This document shows, piece by piece, positions 24,653 to 47,535 of a stretch of DNA of 64,000 nt (position 1 is the first letter of the stretch; each line of letters opens with the position of its first letter). Location: the NCBI RefSeq assembly GCF_032444005.1, contig NC_091288.1:217062001-217126000 (forward strand). The letters are read 5' to 3'. The stretch comes from Ranitomeya imitator (taxonomy: Eukaryota). Position numbers and translations under genes: made by a program. The notes under the pieces are model-generated. The model was not told the origin of the DNA. It did no database searches and worked only from the letters and a program-made list of their open reading frames with translations.

Positions 24653-26213
24653 CAGGTGCTGCACACATAATTAGAATATCATCAAAAAGTGAATTTATTT
24701 CAGTTCTTAAATACAAATAATGAAACTCCTACCTATATTCTATAGAGTCATTACACACAGAGTGATCTATTTCACGTGTCTATTTCTGTTAATGTTGATG
24801 ATTATGGCTTACAGCCAATGAAAACCAAAAAGTAATTATCTCAGTAAATTAAAATACTTTATAACAGCAGCTTGAAAAAATGATTTTAAAATCCAAAATG
24901 TTGTAATACTAAAATGTCTGTTCAGTAAATGCACTCAGTACTTGGTCGCGGCTCCTTTTGCATCAATTCGTGCATCAATGCAGCGTGGCATGGAGGCGAT
25001 CAGCCTGTGGCGCTGCTGAGGGGCTATGGAAGCCCAGGTTGCTTTGATAGCAGCCTTCAGCTCGTCTGCATTGTTGGGTCTGGTGTCTCTCATCTTCCTC
25101 TTGACAATACTCCATAGATTCTCTATGGGGATAAGGTCAGGTGAGTTTGCTGCCAATCAAGCCCAGTGATACTGTTGTTTTTACACCAGGTATTGGTACT
25201 TTTGGCCGTGTGGAGGGGCCAAGTCCTGCTGGAGAATGACATTTCCATCTCCATAAAGCTTGTCGGCAGAGGGAAGCATGAAGTGCTCTACAATGTCCTG
25301 GTAGATGGCTCGGCTGACTTTGGTCTTGATAAAACACAGTGGACCTACACCAGCAGATGACACGGCTCCCAAACCATCACTGATTGTGGAGACTTCACAC
25401 CAGACCTCCAGCAGCTTGGATTGTGGCCTCCACTCTTCCTCCAGATTCTGGGACCTTGATTTCCAAGGTCTAGTGTGAAGTCTCCACAATCAGTGATGGT
25501 TTGGGGAACCATGTCATCTGCTGGTGTAGGTCCACTGTGTTTTATCAGGACCAAAGTCAGTGCAGGTATCTACCAGGACATTATAGAGCACTTCATGGTT
25601 CCCTCTGCTGACAAGCTTTATGGAGATGGAAATGTCATTCTCCAGCAGGACTTGGCCCCTGTCCACACGGCCAAAAGTACCAATACCTGGTGTAAAAACA
25701 ACAGTATCATTGGACTTGATTGGCCCCAAAGGCGCCTGACCTTAACCCCATAGAGAATCTATGGAATATTGTCAAGAGGAAGATGAGACACCAGACCCAA
25801 CAATGCAGACGAGCTGAAGGCTGCTATCAAAGCAACCTGGGCTTCCATAACCCCTCAGCAGCACCACAAGCTGATCGCCTCCATGCCACGCCGCATTGAT
25901 GCAGTAATTGATGCAAAAGGAGCCGCGACCAAGTACTGAGTGCATTTACTGAACATACATTTCAGTAGGGAACATTTCGGATTTAAAAATCATTTTTCAA
26001 GCTGCTGTTATAAAGTATTCTAATTTACTGAGATAATGAGTTTTGGGTTTTCATTTGCTGGAAGCCATAATCATCAACATTAACAGAAATAAACACGTGA
26101 AATAGATCACTCTGTGTGTAATCACTCTATAGAATGTACGAGATTCACCTGTTGTATTGAAGAACTGAAATAAATTCACTTTTTTTATGACCTAATTTTG
26201 TGAGATGCACCTG
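24653..26213. mobile_element. Fold-back Tc1 derivative: two transposase 3' halves in inverted orientation
   Basis: CAGGTG...CACCTG termini with TA on each side (24651-52 and 26214-15). Left arm encodes SPDLIPIENLW..AATKY on the minus strand; right arm encodes SVMVWG..QQDLAPVH..ENLW on the plus strand. Junction near 25466. Confidence 0.9.
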
Positions 26214-34689: not shown

Positions 34690-34786
34690 ATGATGGACAC
34701 ATTCAGTGTGATGTACTTTGTTGCTGTTGTTCTCCCCATAGTTCTCATCACAGGCCTGTGTATCAGCTGTCATAGAAAGATACCAA
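34690..34786 (+). CDS. LAT: LAT coding exon 1 (short ectodomain, TM, CxxC): MMDTFSVMYFVAVVLPIVLITGLCISCHRKIP
   Basis: Polypyrimidine tract and AG at 34682-83; phase-1 GTAAGT donor at 34787. LCISCHR resembles human LCVHCHR. The upstream acceptor implies a non-coding exon that I did not locate. Confidence 0.9.
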
Positions 34787-34905: not shown

Positions 34906-34939
34906 TTCACATAACGCAGACAGATTACTGTGATAACAA
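34906..34939 (+). CDS. LAT: LAT coding exon 2 (IHITQTDYCDNK)
   Basis: ttttttgtgctttctctcttAG acceptor, GTAAGT donor, phase 1 to 2. Confidence 0.8.
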
Positions 34940-34994
34940 GTAAGTTATTCCATTCATGTAAATTTATATAATCAACAGCATCATTTAAATAAAT

Positions 34995-35325
34995 AGATTC
35001 CCTCATAAAAACAGCGCCACCTATAGGACATAAAGATATAAAGTCTATCAGGAAGTAATGAAACAGCGCCACCTGTAGGTCATAAAGGTGTATAGCGTAC
35101 ATCAGGAAGTATGGACACAGCGCCATCGACAGGAAGACTCCACCAGGAAGCCGAAAAACAGCGCCACCTACAGCACATAAAGATATAAATACTCCATCAG
35201 AAACTATGGATGGTCATAAAGGTCTATAGAGTCAATCAGGCAGTATGGAAACGGCACCACCTACAGGTCATAAAAATATGTAGTGTGCATCTGGAAGTAT
35301 AGGAACAGCGCCACCTGCAGGTTAT
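34995..35325. promoter_or_regulatory. Degenerate repeat (about 52-bp units) carrying six CTCF-like motifs and ETS cores, in LAT intron 2
   Basis: CAGCGCCACCTNNAGG-like at 35012, 35064, 35118, 35159, 35252, 35306; CAGGAAGT at about 35049 and 35103. Function is inferred, not shown. Confidence 0.5.
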
Positions 35326-35506
35326 ATGTCGATAGACTCCAATTGGGCAAAAATTCTCTTGTTTCTCATCTTCATCTTTGGTTACATTTAGAGCCTACGT
35401 AGGCATGGCCACCTAAAGTACATTTTTTAGGGGAGGGATAAAATTGATGGGCAGTACTACATTACCCAGACTGATTTTTTTGTATTCTCATTCTCTTGTG
35501 TCGTAG

Positions 35507-35559
35507 GACTCATTATGCTCCACCTTCATCAAGCTTTATGATTATGAATAGACCACCAG
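35507..35559 (+). CDS. LAT: LAT coding exon 3 (THYAPPSSSFMIMNRPP)
   Basis: tctcttgtgtcgtAG acceptor, GTAAGG donor, phase 2 to 1; the other two frames contain stops. Confidence 0.8.
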
Positions 35560-35784
35560 GTAAGGCCTGACCTCAGATTCCCACATCTGTTTGACCACCC
35601 CATGGAGACAGAACGTTCTTTGTAATGTACCGGAGACGGCCTGCCTGCTCTAACCCCACGATATTTCCATAAACACCCAAACATTGATCGTATCCGAGGA
35701 TCAACCCCAGAACAACAAAGTTTAGACCGTAGGACATGTTCCTCGGCTGCTGAGAACTGACCACCATATCCTCTGTCTCCACAG

Positions 35785-35848
35785 CTCACCTGCGATCAGT
35801 CTCCTCTCAGGGCACCATGTGCCACCAGGACATCTTGCTCACCATTCC
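35785..35848 (+). CDS. LAT: LAT coding exon 4 (AHLRSVSSQGTMCHQDILLTIP)
   Basis: ctctgtctccacAG acceptor, GTACGT donor, phase 1 to 2. QDILLTIP resembles human QPDLLPIP. Confidence 0.85.
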
Positions 35849-36221
35849 GTACGTATCCGTCATCTCCATATCCCTGACGTTGGCCTTCTCCTCTGCACCT
35901 ATCTTCACTCAGTAGGGTATATGCCTCAATAGATTGTAAGTTCTGACGGTTTCCAGGTCAGTGTGAACAGACACACACATTAGAAAGTTGACTCTGTTGA
36001 CCTGAGAAGGCCTCGGTGTTTTCGTAGACTTCTAGAAAGTAATTCAGAGGTTGGGATTTCTTACACTTCCTCATATCACGGGCTGACCACAGATTTATAG
36101 CTTCTTGAGGGTTCTTGATGATAAGGAAGTACGTGATAACACCACTACAGATGAGCAGATCACACTGAGATAAAGGGCTCCTACGAGTGAGCTAAGACCC
36201 TCTGAACATCTGTCTCCACAG

Positions 36222-36274
36222 GAAGTCACCCAACTGCGAGAGCCGTAGAAGTTCGGTGGGAAGAGAAATTCAAG
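36222..36274 (+). CDS. LAT: LAT coding exon 5 (KSPNCESRRSSVGREIQ)
   Basis: tctgtctccacAG acceptor, GTAGGT donor, phase 2 to 1. P|KSP resembles human P|RSP. Confidence 0.85.
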
Positions 36275-36765
36275 GTAGGTTCTAAAACTCATCTCATCTG
36301 GAGCATGTATCCCAGGGTTTTATTATGAGGTGGGCACCAGATATATTTGCCCCGTGGTGCTGGTGATAATGTGGGTCTGATGGCGATGATGGATATGGAG
36401 ACTTTCACCGGTTTACCAAAATTTGGTGACTTCCAGATTTTTTGTAGGACCCTTTTGTAGGGTCTACGTCTTGAGCATTGGTTGTGAGGATCTACTATAT
36501 TCTAGACCTTTTATTTCGAATGATCTAGTCAACCTCTGATACAGGTTTTTCTACTTGTCTTCCACCCACTGTATTAAGTTCATTCATATCCAACCTCATT
36601 TCAGAGACACATACAGCAGGACAACCAGTAGACAAATATCTTATGTTTATGGAGAACTTTACCTCTGCGGATAGTCTCACGTCTTCATCATATTTCTTAA
36701 ACTTCTTCTGTCATTATACTGAGTTGTCCAAGTCTTTTCTTGATTCCTTATCTTTCTGCTCTCAG

Positions 36766-36804
36766 GTTACCCCGATGGATGCGACTCCATCCCACGCGCA
36801 GCAA
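36766..36804 (+). CDS. LAT: LAT coding exon 6 (GYPDGCDSIPRAA)
   Basis: Long pyrimidine tract ending ctctcAG, GTACGT donor, phase 1 to 1. DGCDSI resembles human DGANSV. Confidence 0.65.
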
Positions 36805-37189
36805 GTACGTGACCTCTGTAATCTTATGTATCAAGCACAAGTCCAACTTTCCATATGGCACTCGTGATACCCGAGGACCATAAGTTTGGCCCTTCCTAAA
36901 GTCACCTATGATGATGGTAAAACCATCTACCAGGATTGTTGTTGGGTTGATGTATTTCCTAGTTCCCCATACTTGGTTACGACTTATGGCCATCTTGATT
37001 TAATTGGGGACATACGAGGTGGTCATCAGAGTATCTTCTGCAGGCTCTTCATGAATGACTTTACATTTCCCACTTGTATAAAATTTGTACGCGCAAGTAC
37101 AAAACCAGGAAAATAATTTGTTTAAAGTGGAAAACCCCTTTTTAAGTCAAGTGGCCGCATCAACTGTGTCCCTTCTCTCCCATCTGTAG

Positions 37190-37289
37190 GTACTTATCTC
37201 TTAAAAAGTAAAAGTATAGAAGTAGATGATTATGACGATGAAGGAGAAGACCCAAACTACTCCAATGACAACCAGGCTTGCGGATACAT
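37190..37289 (+). CDS. LAT: LAT coding exon 7 (STYLLKSKSIEVDDYDDEGEDPNYSNDNQACGYI)
   Basis: cccttctctcccatctgtAG acceptor, GTAAGA donor, phase 1 to 2. Acidic tract, YxN and GY resemble human DEDDYHNPGYL. Confidence 0.88.
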
Positions 37290-37489
37290 GTAAGAAGGCC
37301 TGATATCCAGTAGATGACAGCGTGTGGATACGTAGTGCCTGCCTCCATGGGAAATACTGTAATGAAATGCTGAATGGAACATAAGGAGATGGTGGAGAAT
37401 GGCTGACACTATGATATAGCTGACAATATGAGAGAGCTGACATTTGCTAGACCTTTTATAGCTGATAACACGTCAGAGCTGACACACAC

Positions 37490-40400
37490 GATCCAAACCT
37501 TCGTACATGTACGCAGTGCACCATCCAAACCTTCATACATGTACAGTGCATAATCCAAACCTTCATACAGAGTGCACCATCCAAACCTTCATACATGTAC
37601 ACAGTGCACCATCCAAACCATCATACATATACACAGTGCACCATCCAAACCTTCATACACATACACAGTGCACCATCCAAACCTTCATACATATACACAG
37701 TGCACCATCCAAACCATCATACATATACACAGTGCACCATCCAAACCTTCATACACATACACAGTGCACCATCCAAACCTTCATACACAGTGCACCATCC
37801 AAACCTTCATACACAGTGCACCATCCAAACCATCATACATGTACGCAGTGCACCATCCAAACCATCATACATATACACAGTGCACCATCCAAACCATCAT
37901 ACATATACACAGTGCACCATCCAAACCTTCATACACATACACAGTGCACCATCCAAACCTTCATACACATACACAGTGCACCATCCAAACCATCATACAT
38001 ATACACAGTGCACCATCCAAACCATCATACATATACACAGTGCACCATCCAAACCTTCATACACAGTGCACCATCCAAACCATCATACATATACACAGTG
38101 CACCATCCAAACCTTCATACATGTACAGTGCATAATCCAAACCTTCATACAGAGTGCACCATCCAAACCTTCATACATGTACACAGTGCACCATCCAAAC
38201 CATCATACATGTACACAGTGCACCATCCAAACCATCATACATATACACAGTGCACCATCCAAACCTTCATACACATACACAGTGCACCATCCAAACCTTC
38301 ATACACATACACAGTGCACCATCCAAACCATCATACATATACACAGTGCACCATCCAAACCTTCATACACATACACAGTGCACCATCCAAACCTTCATAC
38401 ACAGTGCACCATCCAAACCTTCATACACAGTGCACCATCCAAACCTTCATACATGTACGCAGTGCACCATCCAAACCATCATACATATACACAGTGCACC
38501 ATCCAAACCATCATACATATACACAGTGCACCATCCAAACCTTCATACACATACACAGTGCACCATCCAAACCTTCATACACATACACAGTGCACCATCC
38601 AAACCATCATACATATACACAGTGCACCATCCAAACCTTCATACACAGTGCACCATCCAAACCATCATACATATACACAGTGCACCATCCAAACCATCAT
38701 ACATATACACAGTGCACCATCCAAACCTTCATACACAGTGCACCATCCAAACCTTCATACACGTACACAGTGCACCATCCAAACCTTCATACACAGTGCA
38801 CCATCCAAACCTTCATACACAGTGCACCATCCAAACCATCATACATATACACAGTGCACCATCCAAACCTTCATACACATACACAGTGCACCATCCAAAC
38901 CTTCATACACATACACAGTGCACCATCCAAACCATCATACATATACACAGTGCACCATCCAAACCTTCATACACAGTGCACCATCCAAACCTTCATACAC
39001 AGTGCACCATCCAAACCTTCATACACGTACACAGTGCACCATCCAAACCTTCATACACAGTGCACCATCCAAACCTTCATACACAGTGCACCATCCAAAC
39101 CATCATACATATACACAGTGCACCATCCAAACCTTCATACACATACACAGTGCACCATCCAAACCTTCATACACATACACAGTGCACCATCCAAACCATC
39201 ATACATATACACAGTGCACCATCCAAACCTTCATACACATACACAGTGCACCATCCAAACCTTCATACACAGTGCACCATCCAAACCTTCATACACAGTG
39301 CACCATCCAAACCATCATACATGTACGCAGTGCACCATCCAAACCATCATACATATACACAGTGCACCATCCAAACCATCATACATATACACAGTGCACC
39401 ATCCAAACCTTCATACACATACACAGTGCACCATCCAAACCTTCATACACATACACAGTGCACCATCCAAACCATCATACATATACACAGTGCACCATCC
39501 AAACCTTCATACACAGTGCACCATCCAAACCATCATACATATACACAGTGCACCATCCAAACCATCATACATATACACAGTGCACCATCCAAACCATCAT
39601 ACATATACACAGTGCACCATCCAAACCTTCATACACAGTGCACCATCCAAACCTTCATACACGTACACAGTGCACCATCCAAACCTTCATACACAGTGCA
39701 CCATCCAAACCTTCATACACGTACACAGTGCACCATCCAAACCTTCATACACAGTGCACCATCCAAACCTTCATACACAGTGCACCATCCAAACCATCAT
39801 ACATATACACAGTGCACCATCCAAACCTTCATACACATACACAGTGCACCATCCAAACCTTCATACACATACACAGTGCACCATCCAAACCATCATACAT
39901 ATACACAGTGCACCATCCAAACCTTCATACACAGTGCACCATCCAAACCTTCATACACAGTGCACCATCCAAACCTTCATACACAGTGCACCATCCAAAC
40001 CATCATACATATACACAGTGCACCATCCAAACCTTCATACACATACACAGTGCACCATCCAAACCTTCATACACATACACAGTGCACCATCCAAACCATC
40101 ATACATATACACAGTGCACCATCCAAACCTTCATACACATACACAGTGCACCATCCAAACCTTCATACACAGTGCACCATCCAAACATCATACATATACA
40201 CAGTGCACCATCCAAACCATCATACATATACACAGTGCACCATCCAAACCTTCATACACAGTGCACCATCCAAACCTTCATACACAGTGCACCATCCAAA
40301 CCTTCATACACATAACAGTGCACCATCCAAACCATCATACACGTACACAGTGCACCATCCAAACCTTCATACACAGTGCACCATCCAAACCTTCATACAC

Positions 40401-42965
40401 AGTGCACCATCCAAACCTTCATACACATACAGTGCACCATCCAAACCTTCATACATGTGCACCATCCAAACCTTCATACACATACACAGTGCACCATCAA
40501 CACCATAATACGTGTGCACATTGCACCATCCAAACCTTCATACATGTACACAGTGCACCATCCAAACCTTCATACACATACAGTGCACAATCCAAACCTT
40601 CATACAGAGTGCACCATCCAAACCATCATACATATACACAGTGCACCATCCAAACCTTCATACACATACAGTGCACCATCCAAACCTTCATACATGTACA
40701 GTGCATAATCCAAACCTTCATACAGAGTGCACCATCCAAACCATCATACATATACACAGTGCACCATCCAAACCTTCATACATGTACAGTGCATAATCCA
40801 AACCTTCATACAGAGTGCACCATCCAAACCTTCATACACATACACAGTGCACCATCCAAACCATCATACATATACACAGTGCACCATCCAAACCATCATA
40901 CATGTACGCAGTGCACCATCCAAACCATCATACATGTACGCAGTGCACCATCCAAACCATCATACATATACACAGTGCACCATCCAAACCATCATACATA
41001 TACACAGTGCACCATTCAAACCTTCATACACATACACAGTGCACCATCCAAACCTTCATACACATACACAGTGCACCATCCAAACCTTCATACACATACA
41101 CAGTGCACCATCCAAACCTTCATACACATACACAGTGCACCATCCAAACCTTCATACACATACACAGTGCACCATCCAAACCTTCATACACATACACAGT
41201 GCACCATCCAAACCATCATACATATACACAGTGCACCATTCAAACCTTCATACACAGTGCACCATCCAAACCTTCATACACAGTGCACCATCCAAACCTT
41301 CATACACATACAGTGCACAATCCAAACCTTCATACACATAACAGTGCACCATCCAAACCTTCATACATGTGCACCGTGCACCATCAACACCATAATACGT
41401 GTGCACATTGCACCATCCAAACCTTCATACATGTACACATTGCACCATCCAAACCTTCATACACATACAGTGCACCATCCAAACCTTCATACACATACAG
41501 TGCACAATCCAAACCTTCATACACATACACAGTGCACCATCCAAACCTTCATACATGTGCACCATCCAAACCTTCATACACATACACAGTGCACCATCAA
41601 CACCATAATACGTGTGCACATTGCACCATCCAAACCATCATACATATACACAGTGCACCATCCAAACCTTCATACACATACAGTGCACCATCCAAACCTT
41701 CATACACATACAGTGCACAATCCAAACCTTCATACACATAACAGTGCACCATCCAAACCTTCATACACAGTGCACCATCCAAACCTTCATACACAGTGCA
41801 CCATCCAAACCTTCATACACATACAGTGCACCATCCAAACCTTCATACACATACAGTGCACCATCTAAACCTTCATACATGTGCACCATCCAAACCTTCA
41901 TACACATACACAGTGCACCATCAACACCATAATACGTGTGCACATTGCACCATCCAAACCTTCATACACATACAGTGCACCATCCAAACCTTCATACACA
42001 TACAGTGCACAATCCAAACCTTCATACACATACACAGTGCACCATCCAAACCTTCATACATGTGCACCATCCAAACCTTCATACACATACACAGTGCACC
42101 ATCAACACCATAATACGTGTGCACAGTGCACCATCCAAACCTTCATACATGTACGCAGTGCACCATCCAAGCCTTCATACATGTACGCAGTGCACCATCC
42201 AAACCTTCATACACATACGCAGTGCACCATCCAAGCCTTCATACATGTACACAGTGCACCATCCAAACCTTCATACACATACAGTGCACCATCCAAACCT
42301 TCATACATGTACTCAGTGCACCATTTATGCAGTTCAATATCCAAACTGCCAGAGATGAAGCCCCTGATATATGCACAGTTCACAACCCAAACCTCTAAAG
42401 CATACATACTGTAGTGCTCCATCCAAAACCTCAAATACATACATAGTGCACCATCAACACCATAATACGTGTGCACAGTGCACCATCCAAACCTTCATAC
42501 ATGTACACATTGAACCATCCAAGCCTTCATACATGTACACAGTGCACCATCCAAGCCTTCATACATGTACACAGTGCACCATCCAAGCCTTCATACATGT
42601 ACACAGTGCACCATCCAAGCCTTCATACATGTACGCAGTGCACCATCCAAACCTTCATACACATACACAGTGCACCATCCAAACCTTCATACATGTACTC
42701 AGTGCACCATCCAAACCTTCATACACATACACAGTGCACCATCCAAGCCTTCATACATGTACACAGTGCACCATCCAAACCTTCATACACATACAGTGCA
42801 CCATCCAAACCTTCATACATGTACTCAGTGCACCATTTATGCAGTTCAATATCCAAACTGCCAGAGATGAAGCCCCTGATATATGCACAGTTCACAACCC
42901 AAACCTCTAAAGCATACATACTGTAGTGCTCCATCCAAAACCTCAAATACATACATAGTGCACCG
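37490..42965. repeat. 5.5-kb minisatellite of 26/30/32-bp variant units in LAT intron 7
   Basis: CAGTGCACCATCCAAACC(T/A)TCATACA(CATACA). The unit has no + strand stop codon, which explains the long spurious ORFs. Confidence 0.97.
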
Positions 42966-43140: not shown

Positions 43141-43229
43141 TGTGGTACTACCAGACGACGGGGCCACTAATCTTGGACCTGCGCTGGTGGTTACATGCGA
43201 TGTGGACAACAGAGCGAGCCTCTCCTCAG
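43141..43229 (+). CDS. LAT: LAT coding exon 8 (VVLPDDGATNLGPALVVTCDVDNRASLSS)
   Basis: acccatccAG acceptor, GTACGA donor, phase 2 to 1. Completes GYI-VVLPD, matching human GYL-VVLPD (PLC-gamma1 site Y132). Confidence 0.9.
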
Positions 43230-43319
43230 GTACGAGAACGTTCTGTCATCTATCAGGGAGAAAGGTTTGGACCAAACCATTTCTGAGGCCTCTGATTATA
43301 CCTTGTTTTTGTTTCGCAG

Positions 43320-43370
43320 TGGGCACCGATGAAAATTATGTAAATGTCGGCAATTCTGATGACACAAAGG
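43320..43370 (+). CDS. LAT: LAT coding exon 9 (VGTDENYVNVGNSDDTK), YVNV no. 1
   Basis: ttgtttttgtttcgcAG acceptor, GTAAGG donor, phase 1 to 1. Confidence 0.9.
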
Positions 43371-43580
43371 GTAAGGGGAACGTTAATAACGGCATTTCCT
43401 CAAGATGTGGTCTGAAATTAGCACTTAACGCAAAATGTTGAAAATTGGTTTGGAAAGTTTAGCGTTCCAACACCTGGTGATAGGCACAGAACCAGAAATC
43501 TACCAGAGATGATTGGCTACCGATCTTGTTCTTGCTTCTATGGACCTATCTTGTAATAATTTCCATTATTCTGTTTTCAG

Positions 43581-43634
43581 CACCTTCCATCGATGGCAAC
43601 TACGTTAACGTCGGAGATGCGAGTGATATCAAGG
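43581..43634 (+). CDS. LAT: LAT coding exon 10 (APSIDGNYVNVGDASDIK), YVNV no. 2
   Basis: ttattctgttttcAG acceptor, GTATTT donor, phase 1 to 1. Confidence 0.85.
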
Positions 43635-43719
43635 GTATTTATATTATAGATATGCGTCAGGAAAGGCAATTGTGGGAGAAGAGGTCAGACACATGGGGAA
43701 AAGGGCAGGAGAATTAAGT

Positions 43720-44640
43720 ATGAAGGATGCTTAAAATGTTGGTTGAAATTCAATGGTGATGGTTATTGAGGAGGAGTTTGTGGAGACTGATGAAGGATAA
43801 GATATGAAAAAGGATCAGGAATGGAAGAGAAGGTTGGAAAGACTGGTGAAGAATATGGCATGGAAGAGTGGAGATATGCTGCTACGGTCAAGGTCAGTTA
43901 TGTGGTCAAAGAACTGTTAATGAGGAGGAGGCTGGATAAATTGGTTAACGACCTAAAATGGAAGAAGAGGTTGGATAGCTTAGTCAGAAATCTGTTATAG
44001 AACTTGGAGGTTGAATAGATTGGTAAAGAATCATGTATGGAAGAGTAAAATGGATAGATTGGTCAAGGATCACACATGGAAGAGGTGGATTGATAGTTTG
44101 GTTAAAGGTCAGATATGGAGGAGATGGTTAGATAAAAAGTCTAAGAATCATATATGGAAGATGTAATTCGTTAAATCAGTCAGTGTTAGGTATGGAAAAG
44201 GAGGTTGGATAGACTGGTCAAAAATTAGGCATGGAATACTGGAAATATGTCAGTATGGTCAAGGTTAAGTATGGCAGAGGAGGAGAAATACAGAGGTCAA
44301 GGATCAGTTTTTGAAGAGTAGGTTTGATAGATTGGTCAAGGATCAGGAACTGCAGAGAAGGTTAGATATAAATGTCAAGGATCTGATTTAGAATGATGGC
44401 CAAGAATCAAATGGGGAGAAGGAGGTTAGATCAAGACCATTCAAAGTCTGGCATGGAAGATGGGTTTAGATAGATTGGTCAAGGTTCAGGTATGGAAGAA
44501 GAGGTTGAATAGACCAAACAAGGTCAGGTGTGGAAGAGGAAGTTATATATAGGCTGTTCAAGGTCAGGTGTGGAAGAGGAGGTTATATAGGCTGTCCAGG
44601 GTAAGGTGTGGTGGAGGAGGCTAATTAGGTGGCTAAAATT
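43720..44640. repeat. Highly degenerate minisatellite (about 39-bp units) in LAT intron 10
   Basis: Recurring GGTCAAGG.TCAGGT.TGGAAGAGGAGGTT.GATAGA.T. Confidence 0.7.
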
Positions 44641-45032
44641 ATAGAGTTGATGGTTAAATAAATTGCTGAAAAAATAAAGAAACTTAGAGTTGTCCATCTA
44701 GTTTTTATTTGGCTCTTGGCTATTTCCCGGGGCCTTCTCATTGGAATGCATAATTTTTTGTTTAGCCAAGAGGTAACATGATGAAATCCAGCACACCGAT
44801 CAATTTTAGTGTTAGGAGATCCTGATATACATTAGATCCTTGGCAAATTTCACTACATTTCACAATATGTCAGGCGTGACTGGAGAGTTTAGACCTATTA
44901 AGGAAGGATCACATATTGGTTTACTAAGTGGCAGAAGGATTATATCCAGATAAGACGAGTGGCAGGACTTGCCAGAATAGGATGATGCTCGGATACATTG
45001 AATGCGTCAAACGTTAAACTCTCTTCTCGTAG

Positions 45033-45095
45033 GAGAAAGTCTGGAGTATGTGAATGTAGAAGATGCCGAAACCCACTCCGCTTCCATTAATCAGG
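45033..45095 (+). CDS. LAT: LAT coding exon 11 (GESLEYVNVEDAETHSASINQ), YVNV no. 3
   Basis: ctctcttctcgtAG acceptor, GTAGGT donor, phase 1 to 1. SLEYVNV resembles human SREYVNV (Y191). Confidence 0.88.
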
Positions 45096-45222
45096 GTAGG
45101 TTTTCGGGAAGGTACTAGGTAGGTGGAATGTCCTCAGGTCTTAGATGAACATGCTAGTGAGCAAATTTAGGTTATAAAATATTTCCAAACTATGAATTAT
45201 TTGCTTGCTCTGTTTTCTACAG

Positions 45223-45308
45223 GGGAAAAAAAACATCTTGCATTATGTCTTACAGAGAGTGAAGATGATGACATTCCCGAATATGAAAACATTGAGAAAG
45301 TGCATTAA
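45223..45308 (+). CDS. LAT: LAT last coding exon (GEKKHLALCLTESEDDDIPEYENIEKVH*)
   Basis: tgctctgttttctacAG acceptor, with an in-frame alternative AG at 45254-55. PEYENI resembles human PDYENL. TAA at 45306-08, followed by a GT donor at 45310. Confidence 0.88.
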
Positions 45309-45482
45309 GGTATATAAGTAACCCTCTAGTCTTGAGTTGGGGGGCAATGGCCAACTCGTTGTCTCATCTTGTCAAATATTATATCTGGGGATGTTTACTA
45401 TCTCCATCCTCTACATGTCTTCCAGGTTAGGACTCCATCCTTGCTGAAGGACAGGCCTTTATTTTTTATTTTTTTTTTTCAG

Positions 45483-46360
45483 ACAACTGACCCCCAATAT
45501 TCCCTGCCTGGACCCAATAGGAAGTCTTCTTGATGGACCTTTTATGCCTTAGGTTGACCTGTTAACTACGTTTCTTGAGTCCTATCTTTGGGATGACCTC
45601 CTCTTGCCCTTACTGGACTATTCTACATTGAGTTTCTAGGTTGAACTGGATCCCATTATAATTCCCAACCAATCCTTGATGAACCTGAGATGAATCATGA
45701 GTCATTTGAACATAGATGAAGATGGGATCTGACCCTTGGAAAACTCATAATGAATATTTTTCTTTTCTAATTTACTCTTTTTTTTTTTTTTTTTTTTTGT
45801 TTTCTGAAGAAATAAGATGCCACCAAACTGGTGTCAGACACGTTTACAAAAATATTAGATACATCTAGAAGACATCGGAATAGTTCCTAGACATCACGTA
45901 AGAAAGTGGAATGGAACTATTGGAATCCTGTGGTGGAAATGGTTGGAGACCACTAATCTAACCTGAGACATATATATGGTAGTGCATGTTTTTGTTATTT
46001 ATACCTTGTAGATATTTTTATGTTTTCCTTCCATATCTTGCTGGCCAGAGCCTGAGATGTTTGCCTCTTCTATGATCATGGACCTGTAGCTGAAGAACGT
46101 GATAATTTGGTGCCACTGTAGATGCTCAAGATGAGACTCCTTGTGTCTGTAGTAATAGGCCTACAACATGTATAAGCTGACACAAACTCCTCACAATAAT
46201 TAAACTCTTTCCCCCATTATCCTATGATGATATTCCTGAGAAAATGTAAAGATAATCTTTGTGGGGAGTGACCGAAATGCATCCGACACGTTTTATATGA
46301 CGACTTATTTATTTCTTTTATTCTAGTATTTCTACTGTTCATTTTATTATGTTATTAAAG
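45483..46360 (+). other. LAT: Candidate LAT 3' UTR exon
   Basis: T-rich tract and AG at 45481-82; ATTAAA near 46199 and 46354. The 3' end is a guess. Confidence 0.35.
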
Positions 46361-47535
46361 GCTTTGATATCAACCCAAGGGTCCAATCATTTCCTACATA
46401 TTTGCATCTGTTCGAGTGTCAATTGCCTGGTTTATGGCGAAGGGGCAAATTTCGGGTTACACTATGGGCAGTGTTGGAGTATAGAAATTGGTTGAGGGAT
46501 GGAATTTGGCTAGGATTAGGCCGGTCATCCAACAGTTCATTGGGGTCACACACGTCTCCCCAGACGTCCCTGATGCATGCGAATGTCAGACTGAATGTTT
46601 ATGTATTCTCCATGGAAGAGCGGAGGGTTTCCTGAGGAAACAATCGAGTAGAGCGTTGATTTTCAACCGGTCATTCCTTCTCTCCATCAATATCATCTGT
46701 TGGGGGAAGAGTCAGGAGATCCACATTAACGATAGATGGTTGGCCGGCACCACCGATACCGACGGGTTCAGCAGATTTTAATGTGTATGGGAGGATTTGG
46801 TGTTGACCTATAGATTGAATTAGGGCTGGGAGATATAGAGGGGTTTACGGTTTGACCAGAGTTAGAAGTGGTTTGAGGGCCGATTGTTATGTCTGCTAAT
46901 GAAAGGTGTAATGAAGGCAATCCAGAGACACAGTGTGCCTAGCAATCAGAGCGCACACAGTGATCTGACAAATACCCAAAAACAAAGAACGAGCTCTGAG
47001 ACGTGGAAACTCTGTAGACTGCACACCTACCTATGCTAAACACAACTAAAAGCGGCTGTGGATTGCGCCTAGCAACTACCTATGCAACTCGGCACAGCCT
47101 AAGAAACTAGCTAGCCTGAAGATAGAAAAATAGGCCTGACTTGCCCCCAGAGAAATACCCCAAAGGAAAAGGCAGCCCCCCACATATAATGACTGTGAGT
47201 AAGATGAAAAGACAAAACGTAGGGATGAAATAGATTCAGCAAAGTGGGGCCCGATAATCTTAGACAGAGCGAGGATAGTAAAGCGAACTTTGCAGTCTAC
47301 AAAAAACCCTAAAGCAAAAACCACGCAAAGGGGGCAAAAAAGACCCACCGTGCCGAACTAACGGCACGGCGGTACACCCTTTGCTTCTCAGAGCTACCAG
47401 CAAAACAAAAGACAAGCTGGACAGAAAAAAAGCAACAAAAAAGCACTTAGCTATACAGAGCAGCAGGTCACAGGAACAAGCAGAAGAAGCTCAGATCCAA
47501 CACTGGAACATTGACAAGGAGCAGGGATAGCAGCA

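Follow-up and report, generated by a model that had tools for sequence, protein, structure and literature searches.

In mouse and human LAT, the distal tail carries three docking motifs of the YxN type, in the order YVNV, YVNV and YENL (PMC2194190, PMC10079008). The tyrosines of both YVNV motifs and of YENL are Grb2 sites, and the two YVNV motifs are the main Gads sites (PMC2194190). Grb2-SOS cross-links among the three sites of each LAT drive condensation; three Grb2 sites are described as the lowest valency that permits bond percolation, and further sites have been proposed to break kinetic barriers (PMC9629719). The available study of bird LAT compares the motifs of human, chicken and zebrafish only (PMC10079008). 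Here, we describe the LAT gene in a 64,000-nucleotide stretch of the frog Ranitomeya imitator (assembly GCF_032444005.1, contig NC_091288.1, positions 217,062,001 to 217,126,000; hereafter the window), which encodes four distal sites. Very probably, the fourth docking site arose through an exon duplication that happened only once and was kept by selection, with both copies present in the main mRNA. We consider the anatomy and evolution of the extra YVNV exon near certain; for the docking function of the frog sites, we argue from the mammalian protein.

The gene model, assembled from splice sites and phases, comprises 12 coding exons on the plus strand (750 nt, 249 amino acids; Table 1) and is residue-for-residue identical to the RefSeq protein XP_069591019.1, Ranitomeya imitator LAT. 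It matches the Pfam family LAT with 60.2 bits against a cut-off of 27, covering residues 14–245 and profile positions 15–236 of 236. The best database matches are all LATs of amphibians and fishes, and the identity amounts to 96% with R. variabilis, 91% with Dendrobates tinctorius and 62–96% across the other neobatrachian LATs. Its neighbours in the ESM Atlas belong to the LAT family, and in the LAT gene tree, which mirrors the species groups, the window's protein clusters with named vertebrate LATs. The gene is LAT, as the initial annotation had proposed.

Like mammalian LAT (Y132/Y171/Y191/Y226 in human, Y136/Y175/Y195/Y235 in mouse), the frog protein has a tiny ectodomain and a single membrane segment, with CxxC in juxtamembrane position. 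Its PLC-gamma-type site, G-Y-[LI]-V-V-L-P-D with Gly at −1, is likewise followed by YVNV sites, by acidic residues and by a final YEN[LIV]; both proteins match Pfam LAT and are encoded by many small exons. The putative membrane segment and palmitoylation motif were read from the sequence of exon 1, where about 20 hydrophobic residues are followed by L-C-I-S-C-H-R-K. The PLC-gamma-type site (C-G-Y146-I-V-V-L-P-D-D), whose G-Y-I motif is invariant across the LAT alignment, is split across the joint between exons 7 and 8. The frog protein differs from its mammalian counterpart in four respects: it has one YVNV unit more, located on its own 54-nt exon; it lacks the proximal YENE motif; its last YVNV is separated from the final site by 25 residues, compared to 35 in human; and its duplicated tyrosines are preceded by Asn rather than Asp or Glu.

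Downstream of the PLC-gamma-type site, three YVNV motifs and one YENI motif follow each other, each on a separate exon (exons 9–12; Table 1). The existence of this four-site distal tail in R. imitator LAT is confirmed, and the initial annotation was exact in its coordinates (43320–45308), which span the three symmetric YVNV exons and the subsequent YENI exon, and correct in setting the four sites against the mammalian three (PMC2194190, PMC10079008). Exons 9–12 are all entered in phase 1 and have AG acceptors behind pyrimidine tracts as well as GT donors before the introns. As the lengths of exons 9, 10 and 11 are divisible by three, each of them could be skipped in frame. The motif YVNV occurs three times in the six frames of the entire window, always in exons 9–11, compared to a mean of 0.8 in shuffled sequence. 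The donors of exons 9 and 11 carry a G at +5, which is missing from the donor of exon 10 (AGG|GTATTT); the exon 10 donor is the weakest.

Table 1. Features of the LAT locus of R. imitator, with positions counted from the first letter of the window.
Feature	Position	Length, phase	Strand	Content or evidence
LAT coding exon 1	34690–34786		+	Start codon, hydrophobic membrane segment, juxtamembrane C-I-S-C-H-R-K (CxxC)
LAT coding exons 2–7, span	34906–37289		+	AG/GT bounded throughout, phase continuous
LAT exon 2	34906–34939		+	
LAT exon 3	35507–35559		+	
LAT exon 4	35785–35848		+	
LAT exon 5	36222–36274		+	
LAT exon 6	36766–36804		+	
LAT exon 7	37190–37289		+	YSND motif; ends ..C-G-Y, the PLC-gamma-type tyrosine with Gly at −1
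Tandem array, 32-bp unit, ~176 copies	37487–42836		.	Fills LAT intron 7
LAT exon 8	43141–43229	89 nt	+	(I)VVLPDD..NRASLSS, remainder of PLC-gamma-type site and spacer
LAT exon 9	43320–43370	51 nt, phase 1-1	+	..DENYVNVGNSDDTK; first YVNV, Tyr183
LAT exon 10	43581–43634	54 nt, phase 1-1	+	..IDGNYVNVGDASDIK; second YVNV, Tyr201
LAT exon 11	45033–45095	63 nt, phase 1-1	+	..SLEYVNVEDAETH..; third YVNV (..ESLEYVNV..), Tyr217
LAT exon 12	45256–45309	54 nt	+	..PEYENIEKVH; YENI, Tyr242; TAA at 45306–45308
3'UTR exon	45483–46362 (end approximate, from contig cover)		+	RNA contigs X1, X2, X5

The RNA evidence for R. imitator consists of assembled contigs, which give no isoform proportions and from which rare forms are dropped. 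The joints 43229|43320 and 43370|43581 were found in contigs of X1 (study P1) and X5 (study P2), and two of these contigs (X1 record 1 and X5 record 9) run in spliced form from exon 8 through exon 9 into the first part of exon 10. Since single contigs join exons 8-9-10, the two copies are included side by side and do not exclude each other; likewise, every full-length gene model contains both. Further downstream, the joint between exons 11 and 12 (45095|45256) is present in an X2 contig that also connects 45309 to 45483, and the 3'UTR exon is joined or covered by X1 record 5, X2 records 7 and 8, and X5 record 14; in the upstream direction, the loose end of an X5 contig at 43141 corresponds to the final 30 nt of exon 7. 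Every exon is therefore included in transcripts or in the RefSeq model. In a related frog, intron-free contigs from three runs (L001–L003, 1.1–2.3 kb) encode a 249-residue LAT with all four sites in one frame. The frog exons resemble mutually exclusive tandem exon duplicates in being adjacent paralogues of like length and the same phase; in contrast to these, both copies are spliced into one mRNA, so that the duplication lengthens the protein and adds a motif instead of offering a choice.

Exons 9 and 10 lie 210 nt apart, are adjacent in the gene, have the same 1-1 phase and a similar length, and share the end AAGG|gta. Their similarity reaches beyond the functional motif: outside the YxNx core, the two units are 47% identical across species. 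When either is compared with the exon 11 unit, the identity drops to 8–9%, and with the one first-site unit that the outgroup LATs have, it is 13%. Conversely, exons 11 and 12 match the second and last units of the outgroups, which identifies exon 11 as the orthologue of the second YVNV unit of other vertebrates. Because flank identity is so much higher between exons 9 and 10 than between either and exon 11, exons 9 and 10 are true paralogues, a pattern expected from tandem duplication of the exon encoding the first distal site.

The duplication is not recent. Five of the six codons of the shared N-Y-V-N-V-G differ at the third base only (exon 9/10: AAT/AAC, TAT/TAC, GTA/GTT, AAT/AAC and GGC/GGA, with GTC in both as the sixth), and between the two copies pS is 0.85, which is saturated, and pN 0.25. 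With synonymous sites saturated at this pN, the copies are old and have not been homogenised by conversion. In a comparison of R. imitator with the related frog of contig L001 (dS 0.67), exons 9 and 10 have omega values of 0.07 and 0.10, and exons 11 and 12 values of 0.16 and 0.13; the whole coding sequence has 0.22 and exons 2–6 have 0.36. Likewise, the mean identity among 11 frog genera reaches 85% for exon 9 and 73% for exon 10, next to 43–74% for exons 1–8. These values point to strong purifying selection on both exons, and together with the flank identity they bear out the initial view of an old, selectively maintained duplicate.

A repeat-rich genome, with large tandem arrays in introns 7 and 10 of this very gene, raises the general possibility that the assembly or its annotation has duplicated an exon falsely. 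We consider this practically inconceivable here and have rejected it: exons 9 and 10 differ at 21 of 48 aligned codon bases, they are joined in RNA contigs of two studies, and both units recur in a dozen species with assemblies and transcriptomes of their own, in the isoforms of relatives and in the multi-species alignment.

To place the duplication, we compared the LATs of 24 species or isoform sets, which were collected with Hyla sarda LAT as a seed and then by protein and alignment-profile searches; the Hyla sarda protein itself was found through a stop-free reading that runs from exon 8 into exon 9 across intron 8 (90 nt, open in frame). All 13 neobatrachian LATs retrieved, which cover Hyloidea and Myobatrachidae, share the 18-residue unit that contains a second N-Y-V-N-[VI]-G. 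These come from Dendrobatidae (three species: two of Ranitomeya, and Dendrobates), Aromobatidae (Anomaloglossus), Bufonidae (two species of Bufo), Leptodactylidae (Leptodactylus), Rhinodermatidae (Rhinoderma), Hylidae (two species: Hyla and Dendropsophus), Eleutherodactylidae (Eleutherodactylus) and Myobatrachidae (Pseudophryne, lineage checked), the thirteenth being the related frog of contigs L001–L003. The order and spacing of the four distal sites are alike in all of these proteins. While the initial annotation could not tell whether other frogs share the arrangement, it is in fact already contained in the public annotation of at least 11 other frog species.

In the aligned protein tails of the 11 non-neobatrachian LATs, the unit is absent throughout. 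The sites before the final one are YENV and YVNV in Ascaphus, Discoglossus, Microcaecilia, Geotrypetes and Rhinatrema, YQNV and YVNV in Lissotriton, YENL and YVNV in Latimeria, YVN[LV] and YVNL in Lepisosteus and Amia, and YVNV and YVNL in Polyodon and Acipenser. The basal frogs (Ascaphus and Discoglossus), caecilians and newt have an orthologous LAT with the same motif order, and their ..ESLEYVNV.. unit and ..SEDD..P[DE]YEN[IV] end are nearly identical to those of the neobatrachians. They differ in having a single YENV or YQNV unit in place of the two neobatrachian YVNV units, in retaining the proximal S-Y-E-N-E and in being separated from the neobatrachian proteins by a long branch. Given the absence of the extra unit from all 11 of these LATs, three distal Grb2-type sites are the ancestral state, and the fourth is a derived feature of at least Hyloidea and Myobatrachoidea; four sites are not what LATs outside mammals had ancestrally. 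A maximum likelihood (ML) protein tree places all carriers on one side of a branch with 100/100 support, and a single gain therefore suffices. From published frog timetrees, we estimate that the neobatrachian tetravalent tail has probably been kept for more than 100 million years.

Sturgeon and paddlefish LATs also have four distal YxN motifs (YVNV, YVNL, YHND and YVNA). However, their additional YHND is located just before the last site and does not copy the first unit, and it is therefore an independent gain of a different kind. The same alignment bears on a further motif: Gly occupies position −1 of the PLC-gamma-type tyrosine in every retrieved LAT, including those of gar, bowfin, sturgeon, paddlefish and coelacanth. 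For zebrafish LAT, an acidic residue is reported at this position, and Gly has been described as the tetrapod rule (PMC10079008). On our sampling, the acidic residue would be a teleost change rather than the general state of fishes.

The stem branch leading to the neobatrachian LATs is long (0.94 changes per column). It carries the exon duplication, the loss of YENE, the change of YENV to YVNV and a shortening of the last spacer. Xenopus, Pelobatoidea and Ranoidea, which are unsampled, would break up this stem.

Several observations weigh against the reading of a single gain that raised the number of sites in one and the same transcript. First, the node of origin is only bracketed, as the LAT sample is without Ranoidea, Pipidae (Xenopus), Pelobatoidea and amniotes, the mammalian state being taken from papers; moreover, the outgroups were compared as proteins, and their genomes might still contain an unannotated extra exon. 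Second, the joint between exons 10 and 11 (43634|45033) was not seen among the R. imitator contigs, and the contigs that run over this boundary are unspliced. One of them (X2 record 7, 893 nt without mismatches) combines the last 461 nt of intron 10 with spliced exons 11-12-13. That a single R. imitator mRNA includes all four sites is consequently deduced from the RefSeq model and the mRNA of a relative. Third, Asn precedes the tyrosines of exons 9 and 10 at −1, where ZAP-70 substrates usually carry an acidic residue. Fourth, the isoforms of relatives that lack exon 10, discussed below, are predicted (XP_) models. Finally, the neobatrachian LATs lack the proximal S-Y-E-N-E that all outgroups keep, and their total number of YxN motifs is 4–5, compared to 5 in most outgroups. 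Human LAT has five YxN motifs in total. Net YxN valency may therefore not have been raised, with a site relocated instead of added, and a net rise in valency, as initially proposed, is not supported.

The missing exon 10-11 joint is best understood from the way the contigs break. Spliced contigs end 30–31 nt into exon 10, at the point where the spliced and unspliced k-mer paths meet; since a k-mer assembler breaks at such meetings, the missing joint is not evidence of absence. Unspliced contigs cover much of intron 10 (43635–45032) in X1, X2 and X5, and this intron may be retained or removed late. Its retention would bring an early stop in frame from exon 10.

The loss of the proximal motif leads to a different account of the same data, in which the duplicated YVNV exon replaces the S-Y-E-N-E lost on the same stem. 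About five Grb2-binding motifs would be kept, and only their position and type would change, towards more Gads-capable YVNV sites farther from the membrane. A Y-E-N-E/Q is found at about residues 107–116 in every outgroup LAT and in no neobatrachian one, the window having GYPDGCDSIPRAAS there, and the total counts given above would fit an exchange, as would the broad remodelling of LAT that the long stem branch indicates. Human Y110, the counterpart of S-Y-E-N-E, is treated as a Grb2 site, and the substitution Y110F impairs the interaction with GRB2 (PMC11383308). However, nearly all Grb2 and Gads function of mammalian LAT is carried by the three distal sites, with a minor role for the proximal sites (PMC2194190), and work on condensation counts three sites (PMC9629719). 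In addition, a YPN motif lies near the lost site in Bufo and Anomaloglossus. Overall, we regard such a turnover of sites as possible, if somewhat unlikely.

The type of the duplicated motif suggests another alternative, namely that the extra YVNV serves mainly Gads-SLP-76 rather than Grb2-SOS clustering and strengthens the coupling of SLP-76 and PLC-gamma. Gads binds two LAT sites cooperatively as a pair. From a basal amphibian arrangement of YENV plus YVNV, the three YVNV sites of neobatrachians would thus offer more, or alternative, paired docking for Gads. In line with this, Ascaphus, Discoglossus, the caecilians and the newt have YENV or YQNV as their first distal site, while all neobatrachians have YVNV/I, which was then doubled, and in mammals, Gads docks primarily at the YVNV sites (PMC2194190). 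Yet gar, bowfin and sturgeons have YVNV/L at both sites without a third one, and YVNV is bound by Grb2 as well. A role dominated by Gads is therefore quite unlikely in our estimation.

Returning to a selectively kept fourth distal site, we examined whether it is constitutive. In R. variabilis, the annotated isoforms X2 and X3 contain 18 residues, corresponding to exon 10, that are missing from X4 and X5; the two pairs are otherwise alike. In Dendrobates tinctorius, isoforms at two LAT gene models are without exactly these 18 residues. In the aligned short proteins P0011, P0037, P0031 and P0012, the 18-residue gap equals exon 10. Similarly, isoform X3 of Dendropsophus is without 13 residues that contain the exon-10 YVNV. 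No annotated isoform without exon 9 or exon 11 was found among the retrieved frog LAT isoforms. In this respect, R. imitator differs from some other neobatrachians, as its RefSeq record holds the full form only, and among its contigs, from which rare forms are dropped, inclusion of exon 10 was seen and a skipping joint was not. Judging from these gene models, exon 10 is probably a cassette whose optional use gives LAT either four distal sites or three, and its optional use in R. imitator is plausible. The initial suggestion that valency can be tuned by skipping of the in-frame exons is partly supported by these predicted isoforms for exon 10 of R. variabilis, D. tinctorius and Dendropsophus, while it finds no counterpart in the R. 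imitator contigs or, for exons 9 and 11, in any annotation. The two D. tinctorius models lie on one 7.13-Mb contig and are 4–5 residues apart (P0034/P0035/P0031 versus P0036/P0012); they are tandem copies of the gene or else haplotypes left uncollapsed in the assembly.

An exon that can be dropped might also be a redundant spare, the fourth site having no measurable effect and being kept by chance or because skipping it is harmless. Exon 10 is in frame and skippable, relatives have annotated isoforms without it, and mammalian LAT works with three sites. Against this, the exon is kept in every sampled neobatrachian, from at least eight families, with an omega of about 0.1 and a conservation above that of most other LAT exons; a neutral 54-nt exon should have decayed over a span in which synonymous sites became saturated. 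We thus consider a spare copy very unlikely.

Several features of the remaining gene deserve mention. An open reading frame with a hydrophobic stretch at 25020–25166 was considered as the first LAT exon and rejected in favour of exon 1 (Table 1). The gene extends over 10.6 kb, compared to 6.3 kb in D. tinctorius. Intron 7 is filled by a 5.35-kb tandem array of a C-rich unit (86% matches), which accounts for the extreme GC skew at 38–42 kb of the window, and degenerate repeats of 38–40 bp are found at 44015–44620 inside intron 10. Intron 8 (43230–43319, 90 nt) is open in the coding frame, and its retention would add 30 residues without a stop; no such retention was seen in any R. imitator RNA contig. 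The 3'UTR contains a 173-nt GT..AG intron (45310–45482) whose acceptor has a long run of T, and the stop codon lies 1 nt ahead of the resulting exon junction (45309|45483). At position 43182 in exon 8, the genome has C and the RNA contigs of two studies have T, which exchanges Ala for Val (G-P-A-L-V-V to G-P-V-L-V-V). Val is the state of R. variabilis and D. tinctorius, and the difference is probably allelic. A synonymous TGC/TGT difference from the genome was further noted at the end of exon 7 in an RNA contig.

The following course of events can be proposed. The small exon encoding the first distal site was duplicated in tandem once, on the stem leading to at least Hyloidea and Myobatrachoidea, after which purifying selection retained both copies, together in the main mRNA. 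LAT is an adaptor of T cells, with expression also in NK and mast cells; it is a substrate of ZAP-70 and a binding partner of PLC-gamma1, Grb2 and Gads, and its YxN motifs, once phosphorylated, are recognised by the SH2 domain of Grb2. By analogy, in the frog, after triggering of the antigen receptor, a ZAP-70-type kinase would phosphorylate the distal LAT tyrosines, and the three YVNV sites could then dock Gads-SLP-76 or Grb2-SOS, with YENI docking Grb2. Each frog LAT could thus make as many as four distal cross-links, three of them Gads-capable, where other LATs make three, and skipping of exon 10 may return the frog protein to three distal sites.

Condensation of reconstituted LAT is limited by low valency and has slower kinetics at lower temperature (PMC9629719), and the initial annotation had suggested that the additional site could lower the signalling or condensation threshold, for example in an ectotherm. 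Among ectotherms, three distal sites are the number found in the newt, the caecilians and the basal frogs, and equally in coelacanth, gar and bowfin. The comparison thus leads us to reject ectothermy as the explanation of the extra site; a temperature effect is worth testing but is not supported by the comparative data. Overall, the interpretation given in the initial annotation is partly supported.

Literature searches found no published description of the extra unit, of the exon duplication or of the isoforms without exon 10. The gene and its four-site proteins are already annotated for a dozen frogs, and the finding is an unreported comparison rather than a new gene. It concerns a textbook signalling condensate whose behaviour is thought to hinge on just three Grb2 sites, and to our knowledge LAT valency has so far been varied by mutation only. 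We assign a rather low probability to the further idea that regulated use of the exon 10 cassette acts as a splice-controlled switch of LAT valency in neobatrachian lymphocytes. If this were true, the choice between four and three sites would set the threshold or the speed at which LAT-Grb2-SOS and Gads-SLP-76 condensates form. The switch could follow cell type, developmental stage (for example, metamorphosis) or temperature, and frogs would thereby offer in nature what reconstitution work has engineered as a valency series.

A large clade of frogs keeps a tetravalent distal tail under selection and seems able to drop the extra site by skipping. Basal frogs with three sites, neobatrachians with four and neobatrachian isoforms with four minus exon 10 together form a natural series, which could serve to test how the number, type (YENV versus YVNV) and position of sites shape thresholds, kinetics and temperature dependence. 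More generally, the frog gene shows that short docking motifs in disordered adaptor tails can be gained via duplication of a tiny symmetric exon, a gain that is possibly balanced by the loss of another motif.

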